The notes below the pieces were generated by a model that was given only the letters and a program-made list of their open reading frames with translations, did no database searches and was not told the origin of the DNA. Positions 8,579 to 55,661 of a DNA stretch of 64,000 bases are shown here, one piece after another. The position numbers were made by a program, and so were the translations under genes. Source of the DNA: Paragordius varius (lineage: Eukaryota > Animalia > Nematomorpha). The stretch is taken from the NCBI GenBank assembly GCA_964247055.1, contig OZ176050.1:3162001-3226000 (forward strand). The letters are read 5' to 3'. Within the stretch, counting starts at the first letter, position 1. The number at the start of each line of letters is the position of its first letter.

Positions 8579-8952
8579 CTAAAAATAAATAAGATTGTGA
8601 AATGTTCCACAGTAAAAAATGAAATTTTGGAGATAAAATCTATCCTTTTATGTTGTTTAGAGGTGTAAATTAGTATATCACTTTCAATCATATATCCGAA
8701 GAAAAATAAAATAATATGGTTTGTGTGGGAAATAGCAAAGTTTAAAAAGCATGTTTTTTCAATAATAAATGTCAAGTAGTTTTTACATTTTGCTTTAGGT
8801 TTCAATTTTTAAAAATATAAAATAGTAAAATATAAATGATATGAGACCGACCTGTTTTTCAGCGGGCCTTGTGTGGCTACCATATATACTAAGAGATATC
8901 AAATAAAATTTATTTTTAACATTTAACCATTACATATAAAATTTTATATATA

Positions 8953-28932: not shown

Positions 28933-31900
28933 ATGAAGCTTGAATGGGCCTTTTTGTATATAATATTCGCCCTGTTTTTGGCGAAAAGCTTTGGCGCTTA
29001 TGTGGTAAATATTTTAATTTAAAATATAAGCCTATGCCAACTATTGTTCCTGCCCCAGATGCTGACCCACAAAAAGATGCTATGCTATTGAGGAAAGCTT
29101 TAGCTGGATTCGGTATGTAAACCTATTCACTATATTTAAAAAATAATTATTATTATTATTATTAAATATTGCTAAACTTTTAAAATTGGGGGTATTATTT
29201 TTTAAATATCTACTTCTGAATGGTATGAGTTGGCAAAAGTCTTACTACATCAGTATTATATATCATATCACACTTGGTTGAATCTCTATATCAGCACTGA
29301 AATCCGGTCAAAAAATAATTTTTTTGTATTAATCCGCATGACTAGTCGTCTCTCTAAGAAACTACAAGTCTGTGAAATACATTTGTTGAATTCTTTGTAA
29401 TGTTTCTTCCGTATCCATTATGTATCAAGGCTCGTTTAAATGGATTACATATTCAAAATCTCCCAAAATCACAAATTATAAACTCACATGTCTCCGGCTT
29501 AAAAATTTGTTTCAATGCTAAAATCATGGATTTTGACACCATTATATGTTTTATTTTCTAAAATAGCACGACAACTTACAAATCAAGTAGGTATCCTATG
29601 AATGTTTCAAAGTGTTCTTAGATCTATCCATAAAATTTGGTTAAACAATTTTTTAAATTAAATTATGTTATAATTCATCTACAATTATAAAAATAGCCTT
29701 AATAATACGCATATCAAATTTTATTTATAATTCGAATATAAAATTTATTTATTTGCTTTTATGAATAAATAGACTAGTTTCGGAACTCCAAATGGTGTTC
29801 CGTTGAGAAATTTTAAAACATAATTAAAAATTGAGTCTAGGTGTTTCACTTGTAAAATCTAATTAAAACGTGCTTTTCCAATTGGGCTAATTGTACCCAT
29901 CCTCTTGATGAAAGTAAGCGGAGTGCCGCTTCATAATAATTACACATTCTCGAAATGCATTAGTTTATTAAAATTGTTATGGGATGTTATTACCGAAATT
30001 TATGTAATAATACAAATAAGTGACTTGTGCTGACTTTTATCATTTATTTTTAAAATTATTAATATTAAAGCAATATATTAGTATTTTTGCACCTTCATCG
30101 CTTTGAATTTTTTATAAAAAAGGCTGCTTGCGAAGATTAAAGTTTGACCACTATAGTGACTCAAGAAAATATCAAACAATAAGATTTATCATGTTACATC
30201 ACAAAAATTAACTATATAAAATTTGCGATGTTTAAATATTATTTGTGCTGTTTAAACCAAGGTAAAATAACGTGTTCATGCTCAATACAAAAGTGATACA
30301 ATAGTTTAATTCAAATACTAGATTTGTCTATAAAAGATAACAATAGTTTAATTCAAATACTAGATTTGTCTATAAAAGATAATCTACATATTTCCTTATC
30401 CGAAGTTTTCTGGTTCTTTCTCTATTGTCTTTTCAGCCATTTCGACCTTGGAAAGTTTATCGTTCTCCTTTCCTTTGTTATGTTACCCCCTCTTCCCGAT
30501 TATTGGTTGCAATATTAAACTCATCAGTTTGGTTTATCGTTGGACCAAAATCATACCCCGCTTCATTCTTCGCGACGCCGGCGTGATTAATCCTCATGTT
30601 TTCAAAGCGTTTGTATGCCATCTTTTACCGGCGAGAGCCCCTGTTCTCTCCAAAATTGAACCTTTTCTATACCCCGTATTGATTTCATTCTTTATGTACA
30701 CCTCTTCGTCCGGTGTGAAAATTTAATTAAGTATGATGTCTTCATCTAATTGTTGCAAGGGTGTTTTTTAACCCAGGATAAAGGGGTAGCGAAAGATTCC
30801 CAGCTCGAGATAGAAAGGGAAATGACAATAGAAAAAGAAACAGAAAGAAGATATTTGCTCGGGGGAAAAGCACTGGATCGGCTTGATTCAGATAAGGGGA
30901 TATGATAGATTTGAACACATCATTTAAAACTTGGTATGGACAAATTTAAATGTCAGATTTAAATATATTTATAACTGATAATTTGTTGAAATATCGTGGG
31001 CAGAAGAAGTTATTAATGGAAGTCTCCTAAATTGGAAAAGATTCGTATGCGAAGTAGACGTGAGTAAATTTGATAATCATGGTGGATGGAGATTTGCTAG
31101 TAGGCCTCTTTAAGATTCAGGGTAGTAAAATTTTCTCTGCCCAACTGATCAAAGTTGGACAATGATCGACTGAAACCAAACATGGGTTAAATGTAACTCA
31201 AAAATCCCCACATATGCGATCATTTTTTCTTAACTATCACCAACGGAGTTACCCAGTCGATTCGCGTTTTCGAGGAGGTAATGGCTTCAATGATACCCAG
31301 ACTCTCGAGCCTTTTTAATTCAGCGATGGGCACCCTACGTGCAAATGTTTTTGGGATGCTACCCTTTTTCAAAACAACTTGATGGGTGGTCCTGTATAAC
31401 ACCCAATACCCTCACCAAACAAATATTTTAATATCTTCATCCACACAATAAACTTTTCACATAGACTATCCGGGAATCTACATTAGAAACTTTTTTTTTC
31501 CATAGTAACCCAATGTTACCCCAATCCTCATTTTAACAACACACTATAGCTGATTGGCCATTTGTTACTTTCACATCTACCACGCTTTTCCCCATCATTT
31601 CCACGCCTTGAGGATTGATCCCCACTATTGGACCCGCAGGTGTTAAAGTCGGCCTCCCAATCTCCTGCCAGGTGCTTTTCCCTCATATTTGAGCTCCGGT
31701 ATCATACACCATCCTCACCCAATGGCCATTCAGAATTGCTTGCGTGTGGGCCTCATTATTATTATTGTTACCATTCGCTATATTAAATCGCCGGCAACAC
31801 CTGCCAAAGGACCTCGTCCTTTGCATCGGTATTTCTTGAAGCGGACCAGTTGATCGCATGGACATACCCGCATTTTCCGCACTTCTTTTTTATCATCATC

Positions 31901-33001
31901 TCCTGCCTATTATCGGAACCCTTCAATCAAACAACTATCCCCCCACATACGCCATCGCCATTTCCACCACCATTTCCAACGTGACCGTTTACCGTCAAAC
32001 ATTGCAACCGGAAATTTCGTAAACAGAACCATCTCTGATTCTTAACATTGCATCTTCCCCAGAGTTGCACCTGGCCGCACATTCCTTTACCCGAATCAAA
32101 TAATCTATCACTGATTCCGTGGCTTCCCTGCCTATGTGTAACTTAGAATATTGCTGCGAACACATTGTATGTGGGCGCGAATATTTTTTTTCCAGCTGCC
32201 ATCAAAGCATCTACTTCACTTCCTCTAATTGTACAGAAAACAAACTATTTAACTTTGTAATATGGTTAAGACCAATGGCCAATAACAAATTTTTCTTATA
32301 TCATCGTTTGCTTCCATCAATTTGACTTTTAACATTATATTTACATAATCGATATAGTCAAAGCTAGTTGCGAGATTATATTCTTTCCCCATTTAATATT
32401 TCCATGCACGAATGTAGTGTAATAAAGAAAACCACGCCAAATATGGTGACTCGAGAAATTATAAAAAATAAAATTTAATAAGACCACCTTAATTTATTGA
32501 TACATGCATATAGCGTTTTTATGATGTATCTTTATCATGTGCGCACAATTATATATTTTTAATAATAATATTTAACATTCTTTCAGGCACCAACATTGAT
32601 TCATTGGTTAAAATTATTGGGAGTCGGACCAATTTTCAGCGAATACAAGCTGGCGAAGTATACAAACAAAAATACGGACGGGTACGAAAACTTATTATAT
32701 TTGTTTTTGGATATTTCGATTTTTTATATATCATGTTAATTATAAATTATTTATAATTACGGGTATTCACTCATTATTTTGATATAATATAAACTAAAAT
32801 AATTTTGTTATTAAATATACCACATTACAGGATCTATTGAAGCACATTAAAAGTGATACAAATAGAAAATTTGAGAAGATGATGGTGGCTTTGATTACAC
32901 CTGCAGCTGAGTATGATGCAGATCTTGTGCGCGAATCTGTCAAAGTATTTTACAAAATGTTTAGTTAACCTTAAATTTAATTCTAAACGATAGATAATAA
33001 T

Positions 33002-33055
<54 letters not shown>

Positions 33056-34822
33056 ATATTAAGGGCTTTGGAACAGATCTTGATACGTTGATGGAAATTT
33101 TATTTACTAGAAGTCCTCGACAACTTAAAGCCATGGCTGCCGCTTACCAACGAAGTATAACAACGATATACGATAAAATATATATTTTTTATTATTCAAT
33201 TATAGTAAAATTTAAATTATGAAGACAAACCTTAAAAAGTAAAATGATTGTTTTTATTTCTAATCATTACAAAAATATAAAATTGAGTATGCTATCATCT
33301 AATTATTTTCTTAATGCATTATTTGTTATACACAAAAGGTTATAAAAATATGTTTTTTTCATGAAATTTACTTTCACGTTTTGTATTTTAAATTTCAATT
33401 TTAATCTTGTTAACATAAACATTTTGCATTTATTTTGACATACAGAATACAGGAGAGATATGATACGTGATATTAAAAGAGACACGAGCGGTAAAGTTGA
33501 AGATTTATTGGCTGAGATTGCAAAAGTAATTTTATATTTATATATCATCAATATAAACTCTTAATCTCCTAAATTTATTATAATTTTTTAAGGGAAATAG
33601 AGATCCATCGGATACATTGGATCCCAACGCAGCCGCCGCAGCTGCCAAAGTATATTTTTCATATGTTGTCTCAACTTTTAACAATATTTTTAAGTATAGA
33701 AGATTTTTCCAACTTTATTATTCGGAAAATTGATCCCATATGTATTTTCCTGAAGTTTTAAATTTTATTTTTTGACTAGAGCATTGGTTCCCAACCTTTT
33801 TTTGTCCACGCCTTACCAAACTGAAAAAAATATTCCTAGGTCCGCCCCCTTCTTCTCCCCAAAAAACAAAGATAAAAATGCAAAATTATATATAATATTA
33901 TAAACATCTTAACCAAGATCATTGTATATGTTTCCATATCGGGGATTCTGATAATTAGTATCTGAAACCCTCATTAACCAATTTTTTGCTTCCTCCTCCC
34001 CCCTCCCCTAGTATCTTCGCCCCCCTTTTGGTATACTGGACTAGAGGATTAGTTACGAATTATTTTCTACATGATTTTCCATTTATATATTTGACAGAAA
34101 TTGAGCAGTGGAGTCATATCAAATTATTTGGGTGCTTATAATGCGGATCTTATTAAAATACTTACAACCTGGAATTATAATCAACTACGGTTATTTTTTG
34201 AACAGTATCAACGGGTTAATCGTCGAAGTTTAGAACAAGATATTCTCAAGTACAGTCATGGCGAGACAAAAAAAGCTCTCCTTGCATATGGTATATAAAT
34301 TATTGCGGACGAAAATATATCTAACCATTTGAAAAAAAAATATTTTTTAAATAGCCATTAAATATTATTAGGTTCAAATTATTTTTATTAGCGATATATA
34401 CTCATTTTTTAGTATAATTTTAAACATTCGCCAAAAACAATTTTGACTTTATTAGTGAAATGTGTTCAAAATCCTGCCTTATTTTTTGCTGAACGTATTC
34501 ACCACGCAATCAAAGGATTCGGTACAAAGGATAAAGATTTGATCAGAATTTTCGCAACACGTACTGAAGTGGATATGGGAACTATTAAATCTGAATACTT
34601 CAACAAATACAATAAGCCAATGGAAAAAGAGATTAGAGTAAATATCTTATCTTTGAATTACTAAATAATTAAGAATATCTAATATATTTAATATTTGCAA
34701 CCTTCATATTTTATATTTTTTAGGGTGACGTGTCTGGTAAATTTCAAAAGATTTTGTTAGCCCTTTTGTGGGGAAATCTTCGTCCAATTACAGCTCAAGA
34801 CTTAAGATATCAACAACCATAA
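28933..34822 (+). CDS. Annexin (paralog 1), 10 exons, 354 aa, with predicted N-terminal signal peptide
   Basis: Exons 28933-29004, 29031-29112, 32587-32681, 32831-32944, 33064-33154, 33446-33525, 33593-33649, 34098-34290, 34456-34637, 34724-34822, all GT..AG and phase-consistent. Four annexin repeats; GxGT...D sites in repeats 1, 2 and 4 (LAGFGTN, VKGFGTD, IKGFGTK; SDTN, RDTSG, GDVSG). Leader MKLEWAFLYIIFALFLAKSFGAYV is less certain than the core. Confidence 0.92.
30230..32450 (-). mobile_element. Degenerate Gypsy (Mag-like) LTR retrotransposon in annexin intron 2
   Basis: Minus-strand remnants in gag-pro-RT-IN order: ESVIDYLIRVKECAARCNSG, CGKCGYVH knuckle, VYDTGAQI protease, ARRVPIAELKRLESLGIIEAI...WVTPLVIVKK RT, FTPDEEVYIKN...RWHTNALK post-integrase. 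Many frameshifts; 5' LTR not found and boundaries approximate. Confidence 0.8.
30292..30380. repeat. Short tandem duplication (~39 bp x2)
   Basis: ACAATAGTTTAATTCAAATACTAGATTTGTCTATAAAAGATA occurs twice head to tail. Confidence 0.8.
33004..33052. repeat. (TA)n microsatellite (others near 6030-6075, 14536-14561, 15460-15493, 40372-40394, 41073-41098, 43135-43162)
   Basis: Long TA dinucleotide run directly visible. Confidence 0.9.
33782..34038. mobile_element. hAT-type MITE in annexin intron 7
   Basis: CATTGGTTCCCAACC...TTGGTATACTG termini with identical 8-bp TSD GACTAGAG (33774-33781 and 34039-34046). Confidence 0.85.
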
Positions 34823-43164: not shown

Positions 43165-46100
43165 CACAGGTAACATAAAATATAATAATCTATCAATATT
43201 AATCCAACCTAACAGATTTTTAGGGGCTTGTTTTTGACTGAATTATTTATATTTTTATTTGAAAGTTTACGAGTTTTAAGTAAATACTTTAGAAAAAATA
43301 AAAATATTGAATGATTTTTATAATGCTAAAACAATAATTCCAATTTAATATGTTATGAGAATAGTTTTAAGTTTACTTAACATTCATTTCAAGTAATTTT
43401 GATCTGATTTTAGGTAAACTAATATAATGGAAGATGGATTAATTTTGATAATATTTCAATTTTATTAATTCTATTTTCTTGTGTTAAAATAAAATGGATC
43501 TGGTATAAACAATAAGCATACCCCACAATGAACACATTAACTTACACAACTAATATTATTATCATATAAATTGAATTTTTCTGTGAAATTTCTTTTTTTA
43601 GCCTGATCAAAATTTTATTGGTGTTCAAAACAACAAAAATTTTTAAATTATTAATTCCAAATTTATTATTTATTTGTTTGTTAAAATATGGCATGCCCCT
43701 TTTGTCAACATGGAAGTTTTAGCTCGCGCATTTTAATTAAATTTTTTGTTCTTTTGCCATAGGACTCAATCACATCATATCTGCCACTGGTCATTTATAC
43801 ATGAGGGACATAAGAAACGGTCACTCAGGTCATTACAATTGCTTAGCGGTCAATGAAACTGCCAAAGAATTATCCCCAGCCATTAGTGTACACGTTCAAG
43901 GTTTAAAAAATTATTTTACAGTAAAAATTGAAAATATACGGACAAAACGTAAAATTTTAAAGACAAATATTTTTTTTTGAAGGACAACCATACTTTTAAA
44001 TTTTGATTTATTTTAAATATACCTCATGGTTTCAAAATGCAAAGTGTCCGAAATAGAGATATATATTGCTAACACAAACAATTTTATTTTTTTTAATGTA
44101 ATAAAAAGCTAATATGTGAAAAAATTAAGGTTTCCAAAAGATGGTTGTTTTTTTAATAAAAACATTTGTCTTTATATTTTTACGTTTTGTTCGTATAATT
44201 TCAATTTTTACTGTAAATTATAAAAATTTCTACAATTTTATTTTTCTGCATATGAAATGTAGATTTATAATTATAAAATACGACTATATATTAATATTTT
44301 CTCAATATGCCCCTCAAAATTTTACAGGATATATATAAAATTGTCTGAATATGGATAACACTAGTATGATTATGCCCCGTTGAATGGTTTAAAACCCTAG
44401 CAATTGCATAATATTTCTATAATCACTGTCCCGTGTCCCTTTTCAAAATTAAAATCTTTACCCTTTTATAAGAAAAAAAGCATTTCCTACGGGAAAAAAA
44501 TCAAATCTATACAAATTAAGACACATGTTAAATATATATTTATAATATATGACTAGTATGTTCTATTTCAAATGAGATTATATTTATGAAAATAAATAGT
44601 TTTTACGCGAATTTTCGCTATTCAATGTTTTTTCCGATCATATTAGTTCCAGTGGAAATAATTGAAGGACCAGAAAGTCGGAATGTATCTTTCGGGCACA
44701 CAATCACTACATATTGTGTTGCTAGTGGCGATCCCCCACCCTCCCTCACCTGGATTCGTAATGGACAAATCGTAATAGATATCTATATAAATTTTATATT
44801 TTTTTTGGTATTTTTAACAAAAATTTAGGGTAAAATTTTCTGGTTAACCAGATAATTTTAAATTAAAATTATTCCGTTTATATTAATTTTTTTGATTTGT
44901 AATATATGGATTGTGTCAATTTTGATTTAAGTTAGTCATGGGCAAAAAAATATTTTTATAAGATTAATAAAAAAAATTAATATCAATTGCTAAACAACCA
45001 TTCTATATTTAAGAATTATATATATATTTAATTCTCTTTAGCCATCAATTAAAGTTATTTTATATGTATTTGGAATTTATTTGGTTATCGATATTTTTAT
45101 GTTCGTTGTACCGCCACCCAGTGCAACGTATATTTTTTAGTTTTTTATTCTATAATCATAAAGCTATTCCCGATAGTTAAATATGCGAAATACTTTGCGT
45201 TTTATGCAATTTACCAATTTACAGTAAAAACTGATACGGACAAAAAGTAAAAATATAAAGGCAAATATTTTTTTTAAAAGTTTTATAAACCTTAATTTTT
45301 CTCACATAAAACAATGAGTTTTTAAAAATCAAGTTTAAAAAGTATGGTTGTTTTAGAAAAAAACATTTGTCTTTATATTTTTAGATTTTGTCCGTATGAT
45401 TTCAATTTTCACTGTAATGACAACAGGAAAATTAACGCTATTTTGCAGGCTTAAATCTCACGGCTAATTTAAAATGCATGCATAGTAATTGAATTCCATG
45501 TCCGTAATTAACATAAAATGTGATACAACATAATTATTAATAAATAATTAATTCTTAATAAATAATTAATTCTTAATTTGTAGATTTATGATAATTTGAC
45601 TCAGACACCGTATGCCCAACCAAAATTAATGCTAAACGTTACAGAAAATATAGAAATATCTTGCCACGCCTACAATACCCTAGTCGATGGTGTTCATAAA
45701 GCATTACGTTCGGCCCGGCTATTTTCCATCAACGCGATCGAAAGAGCCAAAGATGGTACATTTTTTTTAAAACATTATTCTGTTTTCATATTTCATTTTC
45801 ATATTTCTATTTATCATTATTAGATACAATTTTAGATTTTCCAACCATACCTAATTTTGACCCAAGTTTGAGCCATATTTTCACCAAGAAGGGTAAATTT
45901 TTATCTTCACATTTTTTTATTAAGTCGACCAGCTTATATGTTAAACTTGCAATCCTATATGCTTATAGAAACGTCCTTAAATGAAACCTCAATCACATCA
46001 GAAGGAATTCGAGCTGATTCAAAACCGTATAAAAAATTTAATTTACACGGTGAATATTTTCCATCGCTCAGTGATATCATCATATGGACGGGTGTACCTT

Positions 46101-48091
46101 TGGTCTTGATTTGTACAGCCCTAAGTCTATTTATAGTTTGTAAACGTTGGGTCATCCACAAAATGAACCCATTCGCTTTGCATGATTCGAGCGGGAAAAC
46201 GAGTCATTCCAACAAATCCAGCAGTAGTATGATAACGCAAGATTCATTGCGAATTTTTATATCGGATTTGCCATCAACCGACACGTATTACAATAAAATT
46301 CACAATAATACCATAAGCATAACGAACCAATTGTTTGACAGGATACCGAATTGTGCTTTAAGTGCCGATAGTAATAGATTAAGTTGGATGTCCAAACTTT
46401 TCTTATGGACGCCACGTAAATATAGTCTGGGGAGACAACAGCATACCATAGTTGAGGAGTTGAATCAAAATTATTCAGCATCATCATCACATAACACGTC
46501 GTTATGCACACCCAATAGTGGTGATAGTTTTGCCCTGTTTACCGAATACCCCCGGAATAATCTTATTTACGTAAAAGATTTGGGCCAAGGAGCGTACGGT
46601 CGGGTATTTCAAGCCAGAGCTCCCAATTTGTATCGGAGAGAACCGTGGACTATGGTAGCCGTTAAAATGGTTAAAACACAAGCAGACCTTGAAAAACTTT
46701 TGAATGTTGGTACTTCCAACTTTCCAATCCTAAATCTACAAGATTTGGAAGAGGATTTTTTGCGAGAAGCCAAACTCATGGCTGTACTTCATCATCCCAA
46801 CATCATAAAATTATTAGCTGTATGCTCGATCGGGAAACCGTTATGTCTACTTCTTGAACATATGTGCTATGGAGATTTAAATGCCTTTCTAAAAATGTAT
46901 AATCCATATGGAGAAACACACATACAAATGATCCGAAATGTTGCAGGAGAAGGTGATGCCCAAGACCTGATGAATAAATCGTCAGTGTATGATCCAACCT
47001 TTGCCCGAGATTTGATTCAATCACAAGATCATTTTATACCCTATGAAGTTACACTGAAACGAGGAAACAGTCGTTTACGGCGTAAGAAAAGCCATCGGGG
47101 TTCTATTAGTACAGCTCCTCAATTAAATATTTTTTTCTTAAAACAACAACATAATTATAGCAACAGAAATCTAATGCCAGACATTAATAATAACACCACC
47201 TTTTTACCAGACACTCTAACATTAAATCAAGATTTAGCACCACCACTCAGTATAACGACACTTGATTTATTGTATATGAGTCGGCAAATAGCATCAGGTA
47301 TGCTATACCTTTCTACGAAACAGTACATTCATCGTGATTTAGCCACCAGAAACTGTTTAGTTGGACCAAACTTAACTATAAAAATTTCAGATTTTGGCCT
47401 TTGTAGAAAAATTGATCCAATTTCATGTGCCATGAAGCATGCTCTTACACAGTCTAACCGATTAAATGAAAAAAATGATACTCAGCAGCAACAGTATCAT
47501 TTCAAACGAAACCATAGGAATAATAACTCTAATATCAATACCAATGTTGAAAATAATTGTTTTGTCAATGGTAATAAATCCTTGTTTGATGGTGACACCA
47601 TGCGTAAAGGAAACCGAAATTCATACTTTAATTATTTGGGTGATTTTAGGACCAAAGTAACTCATTCCCGTATGTTCCAAAGTTTTAGTCACAACCACAA
47701 CGTTTCCGACAATGATCCGCTCTACTCCAGTCCGGCCAGTGAATTCGATTACTATCGAACCATGAGGATTCGTGCAATGGCCATACCGGTGCGCTGGATG
47801 CCACCCGAAGCAATCGCTCAAAGTCGGTTTAGCACGGCATCTGATGTTTGGTCTTTGGGTGTTGTACTTTGGGAAATTTTCAGCTTTTCCATCCAACCCT
47901 ACGCTTGGCTCAGGAATAAAACTGAAATCTTAAGCTATTTGCAAACGGGTAATCGCCTGCCACAACCTACTGTTATGCCATTAGCCATGTATAAAAGTAT
48001 CCTACTTCGGTGCTGGAAACATGATCCTCAACAACGCCCATCGTTTAAACAAATCTTAGATATGTTAAATAAATTGGAGACACAATTTTAA
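40563..48091 (+). CDS. MUSK: MuSK/Nrk-family receptor tyrosine kinase (signal peptide, 2 Ig domains, TM, kinase with large inserts), 6 exons, ~948 aa
   Basis: Exons 40563-40746, 43763-43900, 44647-44771, 45584-45755, 45824-45892, 45933-48091, phase-consistent. Ig motifs LTCNS..IRWL / GHYNCLAVN and YCVASGDPPPSLTWIRNG; TM IIIWTGVPLVLICTALSLFIVC; kinase start EYPRNNLIYVKDLGQGAYGRVFQARAPNL...TMVAVKM is MuSK-like; HRDLATRN, DFG, DYY, IPVRWMPPE present. Confidence 0.88.
43919..44213. mobile_element. Family-A Tc1/mariner-type MITE in RTK intron 2
   Basis: TA|CAGTAAAAATTGAAAATATACGGACAAAACG...CGTTTTGTTCGTATAATTTCAATTTTTACTG|TA. Confidence 0.85.
45222..45414. mobile_element. Family-A Tc1/mariner-type MITE in RTK intron 3
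   Basis: TA|CAGTAAAAACTGATACGGACAAAA...TTTTGTCCGTATGATTTCAATTTTCACTG|TA. Confidence 0.8.
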
Positions 48092-48295
48092 AAACAATAA
48101 TATACTCTATTTATATTTGTATGGTTATGTATTTAATTACAAGTTTGCAGCAGAGCTATTAGAAGATTGTGTTTTGTTACATGTCTGCAATCATTAATAT
48201 GTAATGAAAAAAATATTTTATATCGCAATAAATTATTTATATTGAAACATCATATTAAAATATATTTATGTTGGCTATTTATTATATTCCGAAAA

Positions 48296-51200
48296 TCAAA
48301 GGGGTGAATTTATATCTTTGTTTCCTTGGACAATTTTTTCTATTAACGACTGAAACTTTCCTGAGGTATCACCCTATTATTTTAAATATAAATGAATAAT
48401 TGAAATTAAAAAAGTTAAATTAAATTATTAAGTGATTTAAATAATTATCATGTATATTTTAAACGATTTAAAATTAAAAATACTGTTAAAGCTTTGGTCA
48501 AAGATTTTTTGTATTTATCAAAATAGGCATTTTTGATAGTTTCCAAATCAACTTCGCTTCTTGTTGTTAATATTCGAATCAAATTATCTGTATTGGTACC
48601 AAAACCCTATATAGATAAAATTTATATGTCATTTAAATTTAAACGCCCTTAACTTATTAACAGCCTAAAATAATTGTATAATATAAGCAGAAGAGGCCAG
48701 TTCCGTTGTCGGCTAGTTCACAACAACCTTAAAATCAACCCATCAAATTTTAAAATAATTCGTTCTTTGATTAATTTTAAGATTTAATGCCTATTATTAA
48801 TTAATATAATTTGTCAGTTTTTGGCTTACCACTAGTCGCATAATTCCTTATTCAAACAGTACCAGGCACAACCTATAATTTTAAAGGTTAAGTCAAATGT
48901 ATATCAAATAAGGTTAGATAGCCAATGTTCAAAGATTTTATACCTATTTTTACAACTTGTAAATGAATTGATATGATTTAAGTGAAAATAAATTCTTTAT
49001 ATACATACAAATACATCATCGAATAAAAGCTCAACATGACCTTATTCAAAGTAGCTTATATGATAGCATAAATAATTTCAAAAAAATGAAATTTTTGGTG
49101 AAGCCGTAAAAGATAGTTTATAAACAAATTTGATGGCGTTTTTGAAATGTGTAAATAACTAGAGAAATAAGTCAAGATCTTACTGGTAATTATATTAATA
49201 TTTAGAATTTCATAACTCAAATGAAATCCATGATTTACCGGCAAAATACTATTGTGAGAAAATATATTTAATCAAAATGTATCCTACATATTTTCCAATT
49301 AAGCTCGTTAAACAGCGCCTGATGAAGTTCTGAAATGTTTTTGCTATAATAAATATAACTTATATAAATAATCACTGCATACACACGACAGTGTAAAACT
49401 ATTAATATTATGGATATCTTATTCGTAATAGTAAAAATTTCATAGCAATGCATTTTCACGTGGCGAGTTTAATTTTGTCGAAATAAAATGATTAAATCTT
49501 GCTATAAGACATTTTAGAAAAGATGTTTTCATCCAAACGCAACACTTAGCAAACAACATTTTTTCAAGCAAAAACAACTGAATAAATGTTGCGTTTGCTT
49601 ACAAAAGTGTTGAATTTAAATAAAAAATGCTGCTGCTTGAAAAAATGTTGTGTCTGATTCAAATGTTGCGTTTGGTTGAAAAAATGTTTCGTTTGGTTGG
49701 AAAAATGTTGATTTTGACTGAAAAATATGGCTTTAAAAACTTAACGGTCATGACCTTTAACGCAAAGTAAAACTATGTTAACCCTGAATTTCACTTTTTC
49801 GACATAACAAACATTGTCCCTTTCCGCTATAATAAAATGAAAAATTACCTTAACACTGTCATAGAGCTTTTCAGCAAAATAGCTAGGAGTATTACGAATG
49901 ATCCGAACTAAAATTTAAAATAAAAATTATTATTTATGAAAAATTTTTTTACATGCAAATAATATAATGAACATACTAAAGGTTAATAATAATGTTTGGA
50001 ATTTCCCAAAAGTCCTAAGCCTGATTTCATCTTCAATAGATTTTTTTGATAAAATCTGAAATTTGTCAAATATAAGACGCAACTGTGCCGGATTATTTGA
50101 TGTAAAAATATTGATCAGATCATTTTTTGATCCAAAAAGACTGTAAATCCGTGAAACATTAGCCAATGTCTGAATATCAAATTATACATTAAAAATTGAA
50201 ATTATACAAAATTTTATATAAAACAACCATATTATTTAAAATTTGATATTTTTAATATGAGTTACCGTTTTGTTTCGCAAATTAAGAAATCAAATTGTTT
50301 ATATCAGGGGTATCCAACTCGCGGGCCACATGCGGCCGTCTGAGACCTTATGTGCGGCCTGCGAAAATTTTCGAATATAATTCACGAAGATACGCTTAAT
50401 TCTATCCAATCGACAAGAACTAGAAATGAATGTTAGATTGTGTTTTCATTTTGCAATCTTATGCTGAAATCTAATAATTATTTATCAATCTAATGTATTT
50501 CATATGTGGCCCGCCGAAATTTTTTGGGTTGAAATGCTGCCCGCGAAGCCATTTGTAATGGACACCTCGGGTTTATACACTAAACTATATAGTTAAAAAT
50601 TGTTATTAAATAGTTTATGTGGGACAAATTAATGTTTAAAAATGCATAGGGGTCTTTGAAAAATCAAATTTATCTTATGTTTTTACTTATCTCTGCATAA
50701 TATCAAATTTTATTGCAAATGATTAAATTGATAATTTATCACCCGATAATACTTACACTGGCCGCATCGATTGCAGAGTTTTCATTAACATTCATATCCA
50801 ACGTTCTGTTGTCCTAAAATATTTTGTTAATAAAAAATATAAAAAACTTGCAAAAGTGCATCCACAAATGTTTCGATTTTTCCAACTATACCGCGGTTCA
50901 AAGTGTTAACCAAATTTTTCTTGTATTCTATATATTCAAAAAATAATTGTAAAAGTAATTTTAAATTATTCCCATTTTTTTATTGATATATTTAAAAGAT
51001 TGGAAACTTGATTCATATAAAGCTTTCGTAGCTTTCAATTGAACGGGGGAACGCGTAAGCAAGACTTCAGTCAACAAATCCATATCACTTGAAAATCCAG
51101 CAAACTAAATCCGAAAAAATTAATGCTCAAAAAAATTTTAAAAAATAGTTTGAGAATAACCTTATAAAAAATTTTCAATAGATATACAGAAGTTTTTTTT

Positions 51201-52941
51201 AAACAAAAAAATTGATTTTTTTAATATATAAAATTATTATAATTTATAGTATTTTACGCTCAATGCCGAATTTATAATATCGGCATCATATTCAGCTGCC
51301 GGGGTCATAAGGGTAGTCAAAAATTGCTTGACTTTGCGATTCGTGTCTCCTTGCAGATCTTTCACTAAGTTCTAAAAAATAATATAATAAAACGTAACAT
51401 TTTGCATGGTTTAATTACATTTATTATATAGATTTGATAAATTCATTTTAGTAAATTGAGTTTTCTATATTTTTTATCCATTATGATTATGAATGTTTGT
51501 TATGCGATATATGAAAGAAACCCTATTGTAATCAACAAAATCGGTACAAGTAAGCCATATTATTGTTCGAACCCTTTTTAAGGATTTTTTTTATCATATA
51601 TTCATTTTTAACAAAACATTTGTCCTAATGATCTTTAATTGCCAAAATTTACACATTTTTGTTTTAATGGATAGGAGTGTAACCTTAATATTCGCGCACT
51701 AGTGGGAAATATGGGATGCAACAGTTGTTCAAACAGTTGCAATTAAACGTAAATGCACGTGAAACGTAATTTCCAATTTTCGACTTAATAAATTAACTTG
51801 GGTTAAAATAATATTGAGGTGACAATTATTTATTAAGCATATAAAAAGGCTAGTGTATATATTTATGGTATCGGTTAAGTAAATAAAAAAAATATATTGA
51901 TGTTTTTTATGGCTGCTATTATGCGATTAAAAAAAGTTGTTTGACACAAGCAGGATATTGGTCGAAATTATGTTTTTTTAAATAAATACCAAAAATAAAC
52001 ACAAAATAAATTGTAAAAACTTCAAAATATAAAATATGAAAACCCGGTTAAATAGCTTTTGATAGGCTTCTTTTATTTGTTGTCGTTGGTAATTGTTGCG
52101 CCCACCAATGATCTGAAAAACAGTCTTAACATCTGTCCCTTTACAAATTAGCGATTAAAGATAAAAATGTCAATATTAAAACCATATTAATACCATAAAA
52201 TAGTAAATACATATTTTATTAAATTCTAGTGTGATTAAAATACTATGCCTAAGTTGCACCATTTGGTACATAACTTACCTTATTTTTATCAGGGTTTCGA
52301 ACCGGAAATCGGTTCGTGAGAATTCAGCAGGAACCGACCGCATCCATCGGTTGAAACCAACCAGATTTCATTTTTACATTTTTAGGAACCAGTTCGGTTT
52401 CAACCGTCTTGGTACTGCCCCGGTTCCGGTCTACTTTTTAAACCGGTTTGAAGCCCTTATTTTTATTAATTTGGGTTCACAAATATTGTAAATCATATTT
52501 TATATCAGCGTGGTCCAACACAAATATCTTCGGGTAAAATTTTGTTTTTTTCAATTTATTTTGAGCCCAATTTTGGATGATAGACCTTAACAAATTAAAA
52601 AATTTTGATTAGATTCTATAATTTTTTTAACATTTTTTAGCTTTGCATGAGCAACCAAAGACAGCAGAAATTTCAATTTTCTATAAAATATAATTTACAA
52701 CTCAAAATGTTTTTTGGTTTGCAAAATTCTATGTAAAAATCAATTACCCACGCCCTTTAAAGCTTTTCTTAGGCCTTCGGCATCTTGGTTAGCATTGAAA
52801 TTTGGATATGGAACTATAGTAGGCTATCTATATATATTTATCTTATACGTTTTTGTCATATGGGGGTGGTGACTGCAGAATATATTTTCTAACGAGTAGG
52901 GAGAATGTAATGATTATCAAATATTTTGCAAATATCGTCAT
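48296..52941 (-). CDS. Annexin (paralog 2), 11 exons, 354 aa, with hydrophobic N-terminal leader
   Basis: Exons 52941-52849, 52823-52748, 52138-52044, 51371-51258, 51104-51008, 50927-50848, 50813-50757, 50169-49977, 49907-49849, 48606-48484, 48373-48296. Five internal exons have the same sizes as in paralog 1 (95, 114, 80, 57, 193 nt). Motifs [62 protein letters not shown]. Confidence 0.92.
49500..49720. repeat. Foldback-like minisatellite in annexin 2 intron 9
   Basis: AAACGCAACA(C/T)TT units on the left and AAATGTTGCGTTTGG units on the right, in inverted orientation. Confidence 0.6.
50305..50570. mobile_element. hAT-type MITE in annexin 2 intron 7
   Basis: CAGGGGTATCCAA...TGGACACCTCGG termini, GCGGCC(C) subterminal motifs, flanks GTTTATAT / GTTTATAC (7/8 TSD). 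Confidence 0.8.
52290..52458. mobile_element. GAACCGG-rich MITE with 8-bp TSD (hAT-like) in annexin 2 intron 2
   Basis: CAGGGTTTCGAACCGG...CCGGTTTGAAGCCCTT flanked by ATTTTTAT on both sides. Confidence 0.75.
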
Positions 52942-53917
52942 ATTATCTACATGTATGATAAAATATAAAAATTATTCACCAAAATATTTTTTATTATAAT
53001 AAAAATTAATCTGCGATATGGATTCATTGCCAACCAAATTATGGCAATTTGATTGATTAAGTAAATAAATGTTGTGCACATAAAACATAACCTATAAACA
53101 CCTTTTGCAAGCATGAATTTTAAATCATCCATATTTCACCAAATTATTTTAAATTGTTTGAAGGATTTTGACGACAAAATAAAATCAATTGTAATTTACA
53201 CCAAAAAATTGTTTTGAGAAAACCATTAAGTTAAATTTTATGATATTATCACCTCGAAATTTTCTTAAAATAAACTTGGAAGTATACATATACAATTATA
53301 AATATTTACATTAATAACCATAATAATAAATGGTGGGTCATGAGTAATCGCATCTTAAAGCTTTTTACAGAGTTGCTGGCCCATCTAAAAATAATTGTTT
53401 ATTAAATCATTTCGAATTTTTTAAACTACATTTATTTTATACAATAAAACAATTATTTTTTAAATATGTCGTTTTATTTTCTGAAAAGATCGTGAATGAA
53501 ATACATAACATTAATTCTGACAGAAAAAGAGATATATATATATATATTTTCACAAAAATTTGAATTTTTTAAAAATATGATAACTATTCTGGTTGTTTTT
53601 TTGCAAGTTTTAACCGTATTTAAGCAAAAGTACAAAGAATGACCAAAAATTACAACTTTTAGGCATTAATAAATCTCACATTTTTAGACCGTCGCTCATT
53701 GTAAAAGCAAATGTGCCGAGGCGAGAAAATTTTTAATTATGCTAGGTATAACATGAAATTTACCATTTTTTTGGATAGATGCATACTTTGCTCTTTTCAA
53801 ATACTTATTGGTATTTCGAAATATGGTAAAAAGGTTATCCAAACAGATATATATGTTAAAATTTCTCTAAACTTGTTACAAATTGTCTAACTTTCCAAAA
53901 GAACTGGATTTCTTCAA

Positions 53918-54608
53918 CACTTGGATACAACACATTCATTTCCGTCCGTCAATTCTAATTGGGGTATTTGGATACCCCAGGTCTGTTTAAAATTAAATAA
54001 TTCGAAAAATATGGAATGAATTGAAACCATAGCAAAAGCTTTTACATTTATAACATTAACACTGCTATTTAAATTCGGGTATCTAAATACCCCAGACTAT
54101 AAAATTGAAATTTTTAAAAATCTATTATAAGAAACGGTCCCGATTTAAATTTATCCTTCTATCCTAATAAAAATTATATAAATAAGCCGAAATATCTAAA
54201 CAAAATTTGGTATTGAAAAAACCATATCAAACTACTTCGACGCCATTTTTATTTTACAATATTTTTGCAAATATCGTGTTAATTTGATTTTAAAGCTAAA
54301 ATGAAAGTAATTTTTCATTCAAATTACATCTAACATTGAATGAAACAGAAAAAGTGGTTTATTTTGTTTTATTTTTAAATTTACTAATGCACACATGTCA
54401 TATTGACTTATTTTTTTACCATGTACCTAAAAATAAGTAATATCAAGTATTTTTGGATAAATTTTTTTATATATTTTATATTAATATAAAAAGGCAAATC
54501 TTTGCCATATCTTCAATCCATTCCATAATTTTTAATTATTTAATTTTAAACAGGCTTGGTGTATCAAACTACATGCAAAGGACTGATATGAATGTGTTGT
54601 ATCAAGTG
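53918..54608. mobile_element. piggyBac-like MITE
   Basis: TCAA|CACTTGGATACAACACATTCAT...ATGAATGTGTTGTATCAAGTG|TTAA; long TIRs with GGGGTA..GGATACCCC motifs; homologous to 63381-63959. An inverted partial copy of its interior follows at ~54660-54910. Confidence 0.75.
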
Positions 54609-54997: not shown

Positions 54998-55661
54998 ATG
55001 ATCGTTGCAAAAATTGCCTTAGCAATTTTCATTGTATGTCAAATTAAAACAATTCACTCTATAGACGGCAATCGGAAATGTTATGCTTGTGGAACAGTTC
55101 TCACTAATGAAATCTCATCTCAAGCAGCCGTCCTAAGTTGTCCTGAACCCTTTGACAATAATGCTCCTAAGCAACAATCTTCTTGCGTAGGACGATGCAA
55201 AGTAATTTTTCTATACCTAATTTCGTTTTAATCAACATACTATAAAATTGGTTTTATTTTTTGAGAATATCTTGTTAATTCCTTATATTTTGCATCTAGC
55301 CATACGTATTATATTTTGTATATTTTTATTAGAAAACTATTTATAAACGAGGAGATCAAACAATTACTGCCAGAAGTTGTAGTCCTGTATGTTATCCTGA
55401 GGACACCCCTGGTAATATATCTTATTTTGTGTTTTAACATTTTTATCTACTAATTTGTAGTGTAAACTTGTTTATATTAATGGCTATTCAAGGTTAATTT
55501 TCTAATATATATATAGAATTTAACATCATGCTTCCAATTTTTTAGATGTGAAAACATTCTGTTGTGAATCGGATCTTTGTAACGGTGTTCCCAAACTGCA
55601 CGGAACTGTCATTATATTTGCGGTTGCTTTTGTATTTTCAGCCATTTCCTTCTTATTGTAG
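54998..55661 (+). CDS. Ly6/uPAR three-finger (LU domain) protein, GPI-anchored type, 3 exons
   Basis: Exons 54998-55201, 55333-55411, 55546-55661. Signal peptide MIVAKIALAIFIVCQIKTIHS, CYAC start, 10 Cys, CCESDLCN terminal motif, hydrophobic C-terminal tail. Confidence 0.9.

Follow-up and report, generated by a model that had tools for sequence, protein, structure and literature searches.

In textbooks, annexins serve as the prime example of proteins that have no signal peptide, and the locus described here raises the question of whether the annexins of hairworms are made with one. The locus lies in a window of 64,000 nt of the genome of Paragordius varius (assembly GCA_964247055.1, contig OZ176050.1, positions 3,162,001 to 3,226,000 of the forward strand), which is the whole stretch of DNA analysed and to whose numbering all coordinates refer unless another record is named. 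It holds two annexin paralogs, annexin 1 on the plus strand and annexin 2 on the minus strand, and an earlier reading made without database searches (hereafter, the sequence-only reading) had proposed that annexin 2 opens with a hydrophobic leader exon of its own, followed by an intron of 25 nt. Our analysis makes it probable that annexin 2 is an intact gene that starts at the ATG at 52941 in this leader exon, removes the 25-nt intron and carries an inherited leader that targets the product to the endoplasmic reticulum (ER).

The 5' end of annexin 2

Stop-to-stop open reading frames (ORFs) and splice-site reading gave an 11-exon model of annexin 2 at 52941..48296 on the minus strand, which codes for 354 amino acids (aa) and has introns of 25, 609, 672, 153, 80, 34, 587, 69, 1242 and 110 nt in this order. 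All junctions are GT-AG and the phases are consistent. Matches to Pfam PF00191 (Annexin) were found on four separate exons (exons 3, 5, 8 and 10; E-values in Table 1), and together with the 11-exon model they identify a four-repeat annexin core. The type II Ca-binding motif (G-x-G-T and, about 38 residues later, an acidic residue) is kept in repeats 1 (GVGT..QGD) and 4 (GFGT..GDTSG), and the loops of repeats 2 (AGFSSD) and 3 (LFGSKND) are degenerate as read from the sequence.

At the 5' end of this model, the arrangement given in the sequence-only reading was reproduced to the base: an ATG at 52941, a hydrophobic ORF of 31 codons, a phase-0 GT..AG segment at 52848-52824 and then the annexin sequence PTIVPYPNF. 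Both frames are blocked by stops at this place, because the leader frame ends immediately when the segment is retained (GTA TAA) and a TAG in the annexin frame immediately precedes the CCT that opens exon 2, and the leader ORF and exon 2 can therefore be joined only by removing the 25 nt in phase 0. The same reading had noted that no in-frame Met stands between the acceptor and exon 4, and this is correct: exons 2 and 3 are free of Met, and the first Met after the acceptor is found in exon 4. With TAG directly upstream of exon 2, an upstream coding exon is therefore required.

To estimate how often such a leader occurs by chance, we examined every AG of the window on both strands (about 4,800 sites). 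A site was counted if a GT located 21-31 nt before it ended a phase-0 ORF that begins with ATG and is at least 20 codons long. An ORF of this type was found at 4% of the AG sites, and 0.3-0.65% of the sites were left when a hydrophobic window of 11 residues (Kyte-Doolittle ≥2.5) was additionally required within the first 25 residues; the rate of hydrophobic leaders in second-order Markov simulations was 0.09%. The acceptors of annexin 1 and annexin 2 had been fixed beforehand by homology, and both pass, for which the joint chance is about 1e-5. The earlier view that the leader is more than a chance ORF is supported, since at most 0.65% of the AG sites have such a leader, yet both paralogs do.

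The leader itself opens with an n-region, MTIFAK, followed by an uncharged core of 11 residues with a mean Kyte-Doolittle hydropathy of 2.65, which corresponds to the charged n-region and the hydrophobic h-region of 7-15 residues that characterize a classical ER signal peptide.

Mini-introns are real in this genome. In a makorin gene of the same window, removal of GT..AG segments of 22, 24 and 23 nt yields a single ORF, and the 22- and 24-nt removals restore two complete CCCH fingers, CRYYLYGYCNQGSNCRFSH and CRFYLKGKCPYEKKCRYDH, each across a mini-intron. The putative 25-nt intron of annexin 2 fits this class (GT..AG, about 21-31 nt, a stop codon if retained), and it resembles the makorin mini-introns also in being AT-rich and frame-breaking on retention. 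The donors differ, being G/GTAAA(T/A) in makorin and C/GTATAA in annexin 2, where the intron is of phase 0 (here and below, a slash within a splice site or a cleavage site marks the junction). The donor hexamer GTATAA is also used by exon 5 of annexin 1, and annexin 2 has a further short intron, of 34 nt (GTTTTT..TTTTAG), between exons 6 and 7, which are supported by homology. From the chance estimate, the mini-introns and the comparison with Gordionus given below, we predict that the 25-nt intron of annexin 2 is spliced.

Leader exons in annexin 1 and in Gordionus

Annexin 1 was found by tblastn of exons against the window at 29031..34819 on the plus strand, convergent with annexin 2, and it is likewise preceded by a leader exon and a very short intron (Table 1). 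The acceptor is AG/CCT in both genes, annexin 2 merely being without the two codons ATG CCA, and the remaining intron positions and phases are common to the two paralogs, except that annexin 1 has no intron between exons 9 and 10. It had been claimed before that the two leaders share hydrophobicity together with the position and phase of the intron, and the common AG/CCT acceptor and phase 0 agree with this. The in-frame ATG of annexin 1 at 29034-29036 (P-M-P-TIVP) occupies the start position of ordinary invertebrate annexins, which, among the matches of the exon 8 profile explained below, start directly with M-A/P-T-I-V/K. Annexin 1 might use two start codons, one for a secreted product and the other for a cytosolic one. 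In an unspliced transcript, the annexin frame of annexin 1 can also be read without a stop from a second ATG, at 28944.

Among the top matches that the exon 8 profile of both paralogs gave in a set of 1.8 billion representatives were two proteins of Gordionus sp. m RMFG-2023, which also belongs to Nematomorpha. As judged from gene models and protein sequences, at least five annexin genes of Gordionus appear to have a signal-peptide-like leader, with possibly a sixth (P0282). The most informative one is P0165 (CAK9296342.1 / XP_065314739.1, 'annexin A4-like'), which we regard as the ortholog of annexin 1 because the two are 70% identical exon by exon, and whose leader stands on its own exon in both the GenBank and the RefSeq annotation. 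In the DNA alignment, the acceptor AG/CC is at the identical nucleotide in annexin 1 and P0165. Where annexin 1 has the ATG at 29034, P0165 carries TTG (L003:3144-3146), and because of this replacement it cannot start internally and depends on its leader.

Three further genes of Gordionus, namely P0008 (CAK9296931.1) and two tandem genes in L001 that lie inside the RefSeq model XP_065315500.1, likewise devote a separate exon to the leader, and the phase-0 intron after it is located 3-6 codons ahead of TI[VE]P. For P0054 (CAK9296371.1/XP_065314954.1, 'annexin A13-like') and P0282 (CAK9305071.1), the signal-peptide-like N-terminus is known from the protein sequence, and P0282 looks like a chimeric model. 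Records of the encoding DNA were searched for P0008, P0054 and P0281 and none was found; P0008 was mapped through an overlapping model, P0151. A profile search with N-terminal halves and single exons of the window, made for the Gordionus ortholog of annexin 2, returned only P0282 and an alternative model of P0165.

All the mapped leader introns are of phase 0 and lie 1-6 codons before TI[VE]P (one codon in annexin 2, three in annexin 1 and 3-6 in Gordionus), and annexin 2 thus has the layout of the hairworm clade, with its own leader exon and a phase-0 intron at this distance. Like annexin 2, the Gordionus proteins combine four repeats with an N-terminal signal-peptide-like leader. The difference is in intron length, which is 71, 237, 335 and 6,728 nt in Gordionus and 25 and 26 nt here. 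The sequence-only reading had proposed that the leader exon was acquired before the duplication and that there may be a family of signal-peptide annexins, and P0165 and the further Gordionus leader exons, with their phase-0 introns at the same place, lend support to both parts.

The leaders were also compared directly. That of annexin 2 is equal in length to three 31-codon Gordionus leaders and can be aligned with them without gaps, with 5-7 identities, and the mean BLOSUM62 score was +9.3, compared with -20.6 ± 9.7 in shuffles (p = 0.0016). When core and tail were shuffled separately, so that the n/h/c layout was kept, the shuffled score was -8.0 ± 8.3 (p = 0.02). Because signal peptides are of low complexity, we take this alignment as suggestive only of homology between the leaders.

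Gene order has also been kept between the two genomes. By exact look-up, P0015, P0151 and P0165 are on one Gordionus chromosome, and P0165 and P0015 (CAK9296345.1), an annexin 2-like fragment, are about 55 kb apart and convergent, as are annexin 1 and annexin 2 here. The region 28933-52941 of the window corresponds to 33.96-34.07 Mb of OX940784.2, with annexin 1, the intervening gene or genes and the convergent annexin 2-like gene in the same order. The annexin 1 ortholog spans 34 kb in Gordionus and 5.9 kb here, which means that the introns are much more compact in the present genome.

A side observation on Gordionus concerns the RefSeq protein XP_065315500.1 ('annexin A6-like', 1179 aa; L001:6001-59065, OX940784.2), which has the appearance of three or four tandem annexin genes, each with a single tetrad of repeats, that were fused into one model. 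It has signal-peptide-like segments, MTINRSNLILLFF.. and MNTSGLLMLAILLL.., in its interior, and four exons resembling exon 2 at 8875, 15577, 29084 and 51228.

Table 1. Positions of the annexin exons and leader introns in the window, and of leader exons in Gordionus (records of Gordionus are named in the position column)
Feature	Position	Strand	Description
Annexin 2 exon 1, leader	52849..52941	-	31 codons; ORF from ATG 52941-52939; A at -3 of ATG
Annexin 2 putative intron 1	52824..52848	-	GTATAAGATAAATATATATAGATAG; GTATAAG...GATAG; 25 nt, phase 0, GT..AG
Annexin 2 exon 2	52748..52823	-	CCT ACT ATA GTT..., starts PTIVPYPNF; 25 residues + (G); begins repeat 1; then donor GTAATT
Annexin 2 exon 3	52044..52138	-	Repeat 1, ..GTDVKTVFQIIGGRNNYQRQQIKEAYQKLFNR; Pfam Annexin E = 1e-7
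Annexin 2 exon 4	51258..51371	-	Holds first in-frame Met (TTLMTP) downstream of leader
Annexin 2 exon 5	51008..51104	-	Repeat 2; degenerate Ca loop AGFSSD; Pfam Annexin E = 0.002
Annexin 2 exon 6	50848..50927	-	ORF/splice-site reading
Annexin 2 exon 7	50757..50813	-	34-nt intron (50814-50847) before this exon
Annexin 2 exon 8	49977..50169	-	Repeat 3; Pfam Annexin E = 2e-9; 56% identity to syntenic Gordionus fragment P0015
Annexin 2 exon 9	49849..49907	-	ORF/splice-site reading
Annexin 2 exon 10	48484..48606	-	Repeat 4; Ca loop GFGTNTD intact; Pfam Annexin E = 3e-13
Annexin 2 exon 11	48296..48373	-	Includes stop codon; ORF/splice-site reading
Annexin 1 leader exon	28933..29004	+	MKLEWAFLYIIFALFLAKSFGAYV; homologous leader exon in Gordionus ortholog P0165
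Annexin 1 intron 1	29005..29030	+	26 nt, phase 0, GT..AG; orthologous to 71-nt annotated Gordionus intron
Annexin 1 exon 2	29031..29113	+	PMPTIVPAPDADPQKDAMLLRKALAGFG; AG/CCT ATG CCA ACT = PMPTIVPAP
P0165 leader, own exon	L003:3001-3069		MKYILWIAVLYLSGYFYKIMAYQ; then 71-nt phase-0 intron and PLPTIVPAR; GenBank and RefSeq annotation
P0008 leader	6.7 kb upstream of AGGTIEPIPNF		MNTSGLLMLAILLLQLKSYLVK; 22 codons; mapped via P0151
Leaders of two tandem genes	L001		MTINRSNLILLFFVCIQSLILLNGQEATRSR and MATIRSNLFILIFICIHSLILLNGQEAPRFG; 31 codons each; introns 335 and 237 nt

Alternative readings of the leader

Several results weigh against the above reading of annexin 2, and we set them out here together with the alternatives to which they lead. 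RNA support for annexin 2 was not found: none of the runs recorded as RNA contains the stretch, and three runs of the same species label that are possibly RNA gave just chance matches of about 20 nt over 48200-54100. Comparison with a relative was possible through X3, a DNA run of a relative diverged by about 4%, a contig of which covers 52769-53090. Over the leader, the intron and exon 2, the sole listed change is an in-frame 3-nt insertion in the leader (Lys after Thr2), and in the 150 nt upstream of the ATG there are seven substitutions and a 1-nt deletion (53001). This pattern fits a coding leader but is weak support, because the variation occurs in patches and the list omits two substitutions and one gap letter of the contig. 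On the side of Gordionus, the models are computational annotations, and the syntenic ortholog of annexin 2, P0015, is annotated as a fragment of exons 6-8 only. Neither exons 2-5 nor a leader of this ortholog was found within 10 kb upstream of P0015 (L002/L004), and because its 5' end was not recovered, it is unusable as an ortholog test of the leader.

The remaining points concern the leader as a signal peptide. It has R18-K19 where the Gordionus leaders have Q-S, H-S or Q-N, and this charged pair cuts the h-region to 11 residues. By homology to ..LLNG/QEA of Gordionus, the cleavage site would be ..ILQS/PPP, in which the residues at -1 (Ser) and -3 (Leu) would be tolerated, whereas the Pro at +1 speaks against cleavage by signal peptidase. 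As a signal peptide, the annexin 2 leader is sub-canonical, and it is less canonical than the annexin 1 leader.

These features are the basis of the alternative that survives best, namely that the leader is translated and spliced but acts as an uncleaved signal anchor that would hold the annexin at the membrane, or is a decaying signal of a fast-evolving paralog and no longer targets the ER. Besides the break of the core by R18-K19 and the Pro after the predicted cleavage site, it can draw on the divergence of annexin 2, which is the most diverged member of the family (its identity to the three full-length Gordionus proteins used for comparison is 38-45%, while annexin 1 and its ortholog are 70% identical), and on the degeneration of two of its four Ca-binding loops. 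However, the 11-residue core with its hydropathy of 2.65 is within the range of normal h-regions, and it resembles the leader of a neighbouring gene, MIVAKIALAIFIVCQIKTIHS, in which a basic residue likewise follows the core. We further judge that annexin 2 is not decaying overall, because none of the ten downstream exons is disrupted and their junctions are GT-AG. An anchor or a decayed signal appears to us unlikely.

The second alternative holds that the ORF at 52941 has arisen by chance in an AT-rich promoter or untranslated region, that the true first exon is elsewhere upstream and that annexin 2 is an ordinary cytosolic annexin. The sequence-only reading had argued that annexin 2 needs an upstream exon and hence this ORF; the upstream exon is indeed required, but the argument is insufficient alone, since 37 phase-0 ATG..GT candidates for a first exon, 11 of them with a GTA-type donor, lie in the 2.1 kb that separate annexin 2 from the neighbouring gene. 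They include a 51-codon ORF at 53132-52980 with a 156-nt intron and a very short one at 53321-53310, and codons for I, F, L and K arise easily where the sequence is AT-rich. What speaks against the chance ORF is the low probability per acceptor obtained in the scan, with such a leader present at both paralogs, and the hydrophobic leader exon of all annexins in the clade whose 5' end could be mapped; no other upstream candidate is hydrophobic at its N-terminus. In addition, the 1-nt deletion at 53001 in X3 shifts the frame of the ORF 53132-52980, whereas the ORF at 52941 stays in frame, with the reservation that the unlisted gap letter could compensate for the deletion. We therefore hold this alternative to be quite unlikely.

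It is also conceivable that the same ATG and leader are used, but that Leu16 is the last codon of the exon (to 52894) and a phase-0 intron of 70 nt (52893-52824) with the donor GTTAGA comes next. This combination is in phase and open, and 70 nt matches both the ordinary short introns of annexin 2 (69 and 80 nt) and the 71-nt intron of the Gordionus annexin 1 ortholog. The donor speaks against it, because T at +3 was found in just 3 of 22 donors read by eye and GTATAA has the usual A, and so does the comparison of leaders, since it is the 31-codon version, and not the one of 16 residues, that matches three Gordionus leaders in length and in the polar tail; a leader of 16 residues would be without a c-region. 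This variant is accordingly considered very unlikely.

Trans-spliced leaders donate the AUG in flatworms, and such a leader at the 52823 acceptor, which stands exactly where annexin 1 has ATG-CCA, would recreate M-PTIVP, as at the start of ordinary invertebrate annexins, if it ended in AUG, but we set this idea aside as extremely improbable because cis leader exons occur at this acceptor throughout the family, in annexin 1 and in all the mapped Gordionus genes, and no sign of AUG-donating spliced leaders was found in this lineage, for which no dedicated test was made.

Possible origin and role of hairworm annexin leaders

If the preferred reading of annexin 2 is correct, with translation from ATG 52941 and a 25-nt intron, the steps would be as follows. 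Translation would start in the dedicated leader exon, which the 25-nt phase-0 intron would join to the annexin core, and the leader would direct the protein to the ER and thereby to the classical secretory pathway, instead of the cytosol in which ordinary annexins stay; ER targeting, cleavage and secretion are predictions from the sequence. The leader exon and its intron would have been inherited in common with annexin 1 and the Gordionus annexin clade, and because they are shared in this manner, they should predate the duplications. The intron would then have shrunk to the size of a mini-intron in the present species, and this reduction to 25 nt appears to be the distinctive local feature of annexin 2. 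Since the layout recurs in at least five annexin genes of a second hairworm, these animals probably make classically secreted annexins.

As to the origin of the leader, the ancestral start of the annexins appears to be the ATG that is kept at 29034 of annexin 1, has become TTG in Gordionus and has been deleted in annexin 2. This pattern suggests that a 5' exon acquired a coding function and that initiation moved to it. A more far-reaching scenario, which we put forward tentatively and consider doubtful at present, is that hairworms converted a whole annexin branch to secreted proteins, in that a non-coding 5' exon turned into a signal peptide and tandem expansion then produced factors acting on the insect host. 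Such factors may act, for example, by masking phosphatidylserine or by blocking haemocyte or clotting responses, and it is speculation that the proteins have an extracellular role, for instance by binding host phospholipid in a Ca-dependent manner in the haemocoel of the insect.

The hairworm annexins resemble conventional annexins (vertebrate ANXA and invertebrate ANXB) in having four PF00191 repeats and intron positions such as KG.G/TD, and the N-terminus M-x-TI(V/K)..NF..DA..LRKA is common to both. The difference is that conventional annexins are without a signal peptide and are exported, if at all, by unconventional routes, whereas here an additional coding leader exon stands before the ancestral start. 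Signal-peptide-like N-termini are rare among annexins: a crude rule picked them out in nine of the 352 annexin-family proteins retrieved, and five of the nine are from Gordionus. Two annexin-domain models of the firefly Ignelater luminosus, P0036 and P0067 (KAF2897866.1 and KAF2897859.1), which are on one contig, also have signal-peptide-like starts, which may be genuine or mispredicted.

A precedent is known from cyst nematodes. The annexin-like effectors 4F01 of Heterodera (Hs4F01/Hg4F01) combine four annexin domains with an N-terminal signal peptide predicted to be cleavable, are expressed in a secretory gland and are delivered to the host, and among nematode annexins the signal peptide was found only in Heterodera (PMC2791119). 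They are similar to annexin 2 in being annexins of an ecdysozoan parasite with a signal-peptide-like leader, and differ from it in belonging to another phylum and in being a single gene, whereas hairworms have a gene family. Because the cited work restricts nematode signal-peptide annexins to Heterodera, the signal peptides of the two groups are likely of independent origin.

Signal-peptide annexins are therefore known but rare. The Gordionus models are public but have not been named as such, and our literature search found no paper that links Gordionus or Nematomorpha with annexins; annexin 2 of the window adds to this kind. The sole published exception that we have found being one lineage of cyst-nematode effectors, the hairworm genes, if the above reading is true, would be the second case of signal-peptide annexins, and a family-wide one, in at least two genera, in a parasite bathed in insect haemolymph. 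They would then become candidate host-interaction factors. There is also a practical consequence for annotation: gene finders that forbid introns shorter than about 30-40 nt would miss the leaders here and call annexin 2 truncated, and they would start annexin 1 at its internal ATG, by which a secreted protein is mislabelled as cytosolic.

Some minor features of the surroundings of annexin 2 are added here. Its intron 2 contains, at 52290-52470, a GC-richer block with repeated accggaacc / ggttcgaaacc motifs, which looks derived from a short interspersed element (SINE) or a tRNA; no tRNA was predicted in it by ARAGORN, and the block is identical in the diverged run X3. The X3 contigs suggest high-copy repeats at two places, 53913-54100 and 49579-49775, where their depth is in the thousands and in the hundreds, respectively, compared with about 5 in other places. 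On the 3' side, a receptor-kinase-like gene with a long ORF at 45872-48088 on the plus strand reaches to within about 200 nt of the annexin 2 stop, and the two genes are convergent with a very short spacer. On the 5' side, the neighbouring gene mentioned above is located head-to-head at 54998-55228 on the plus strand, 2.06 kb from the annexin 2 ATG, and its signal-peptide-like start, MIVAKIALAIFIVCQIKTIHS.., is followed by a Cys-rich stretch.

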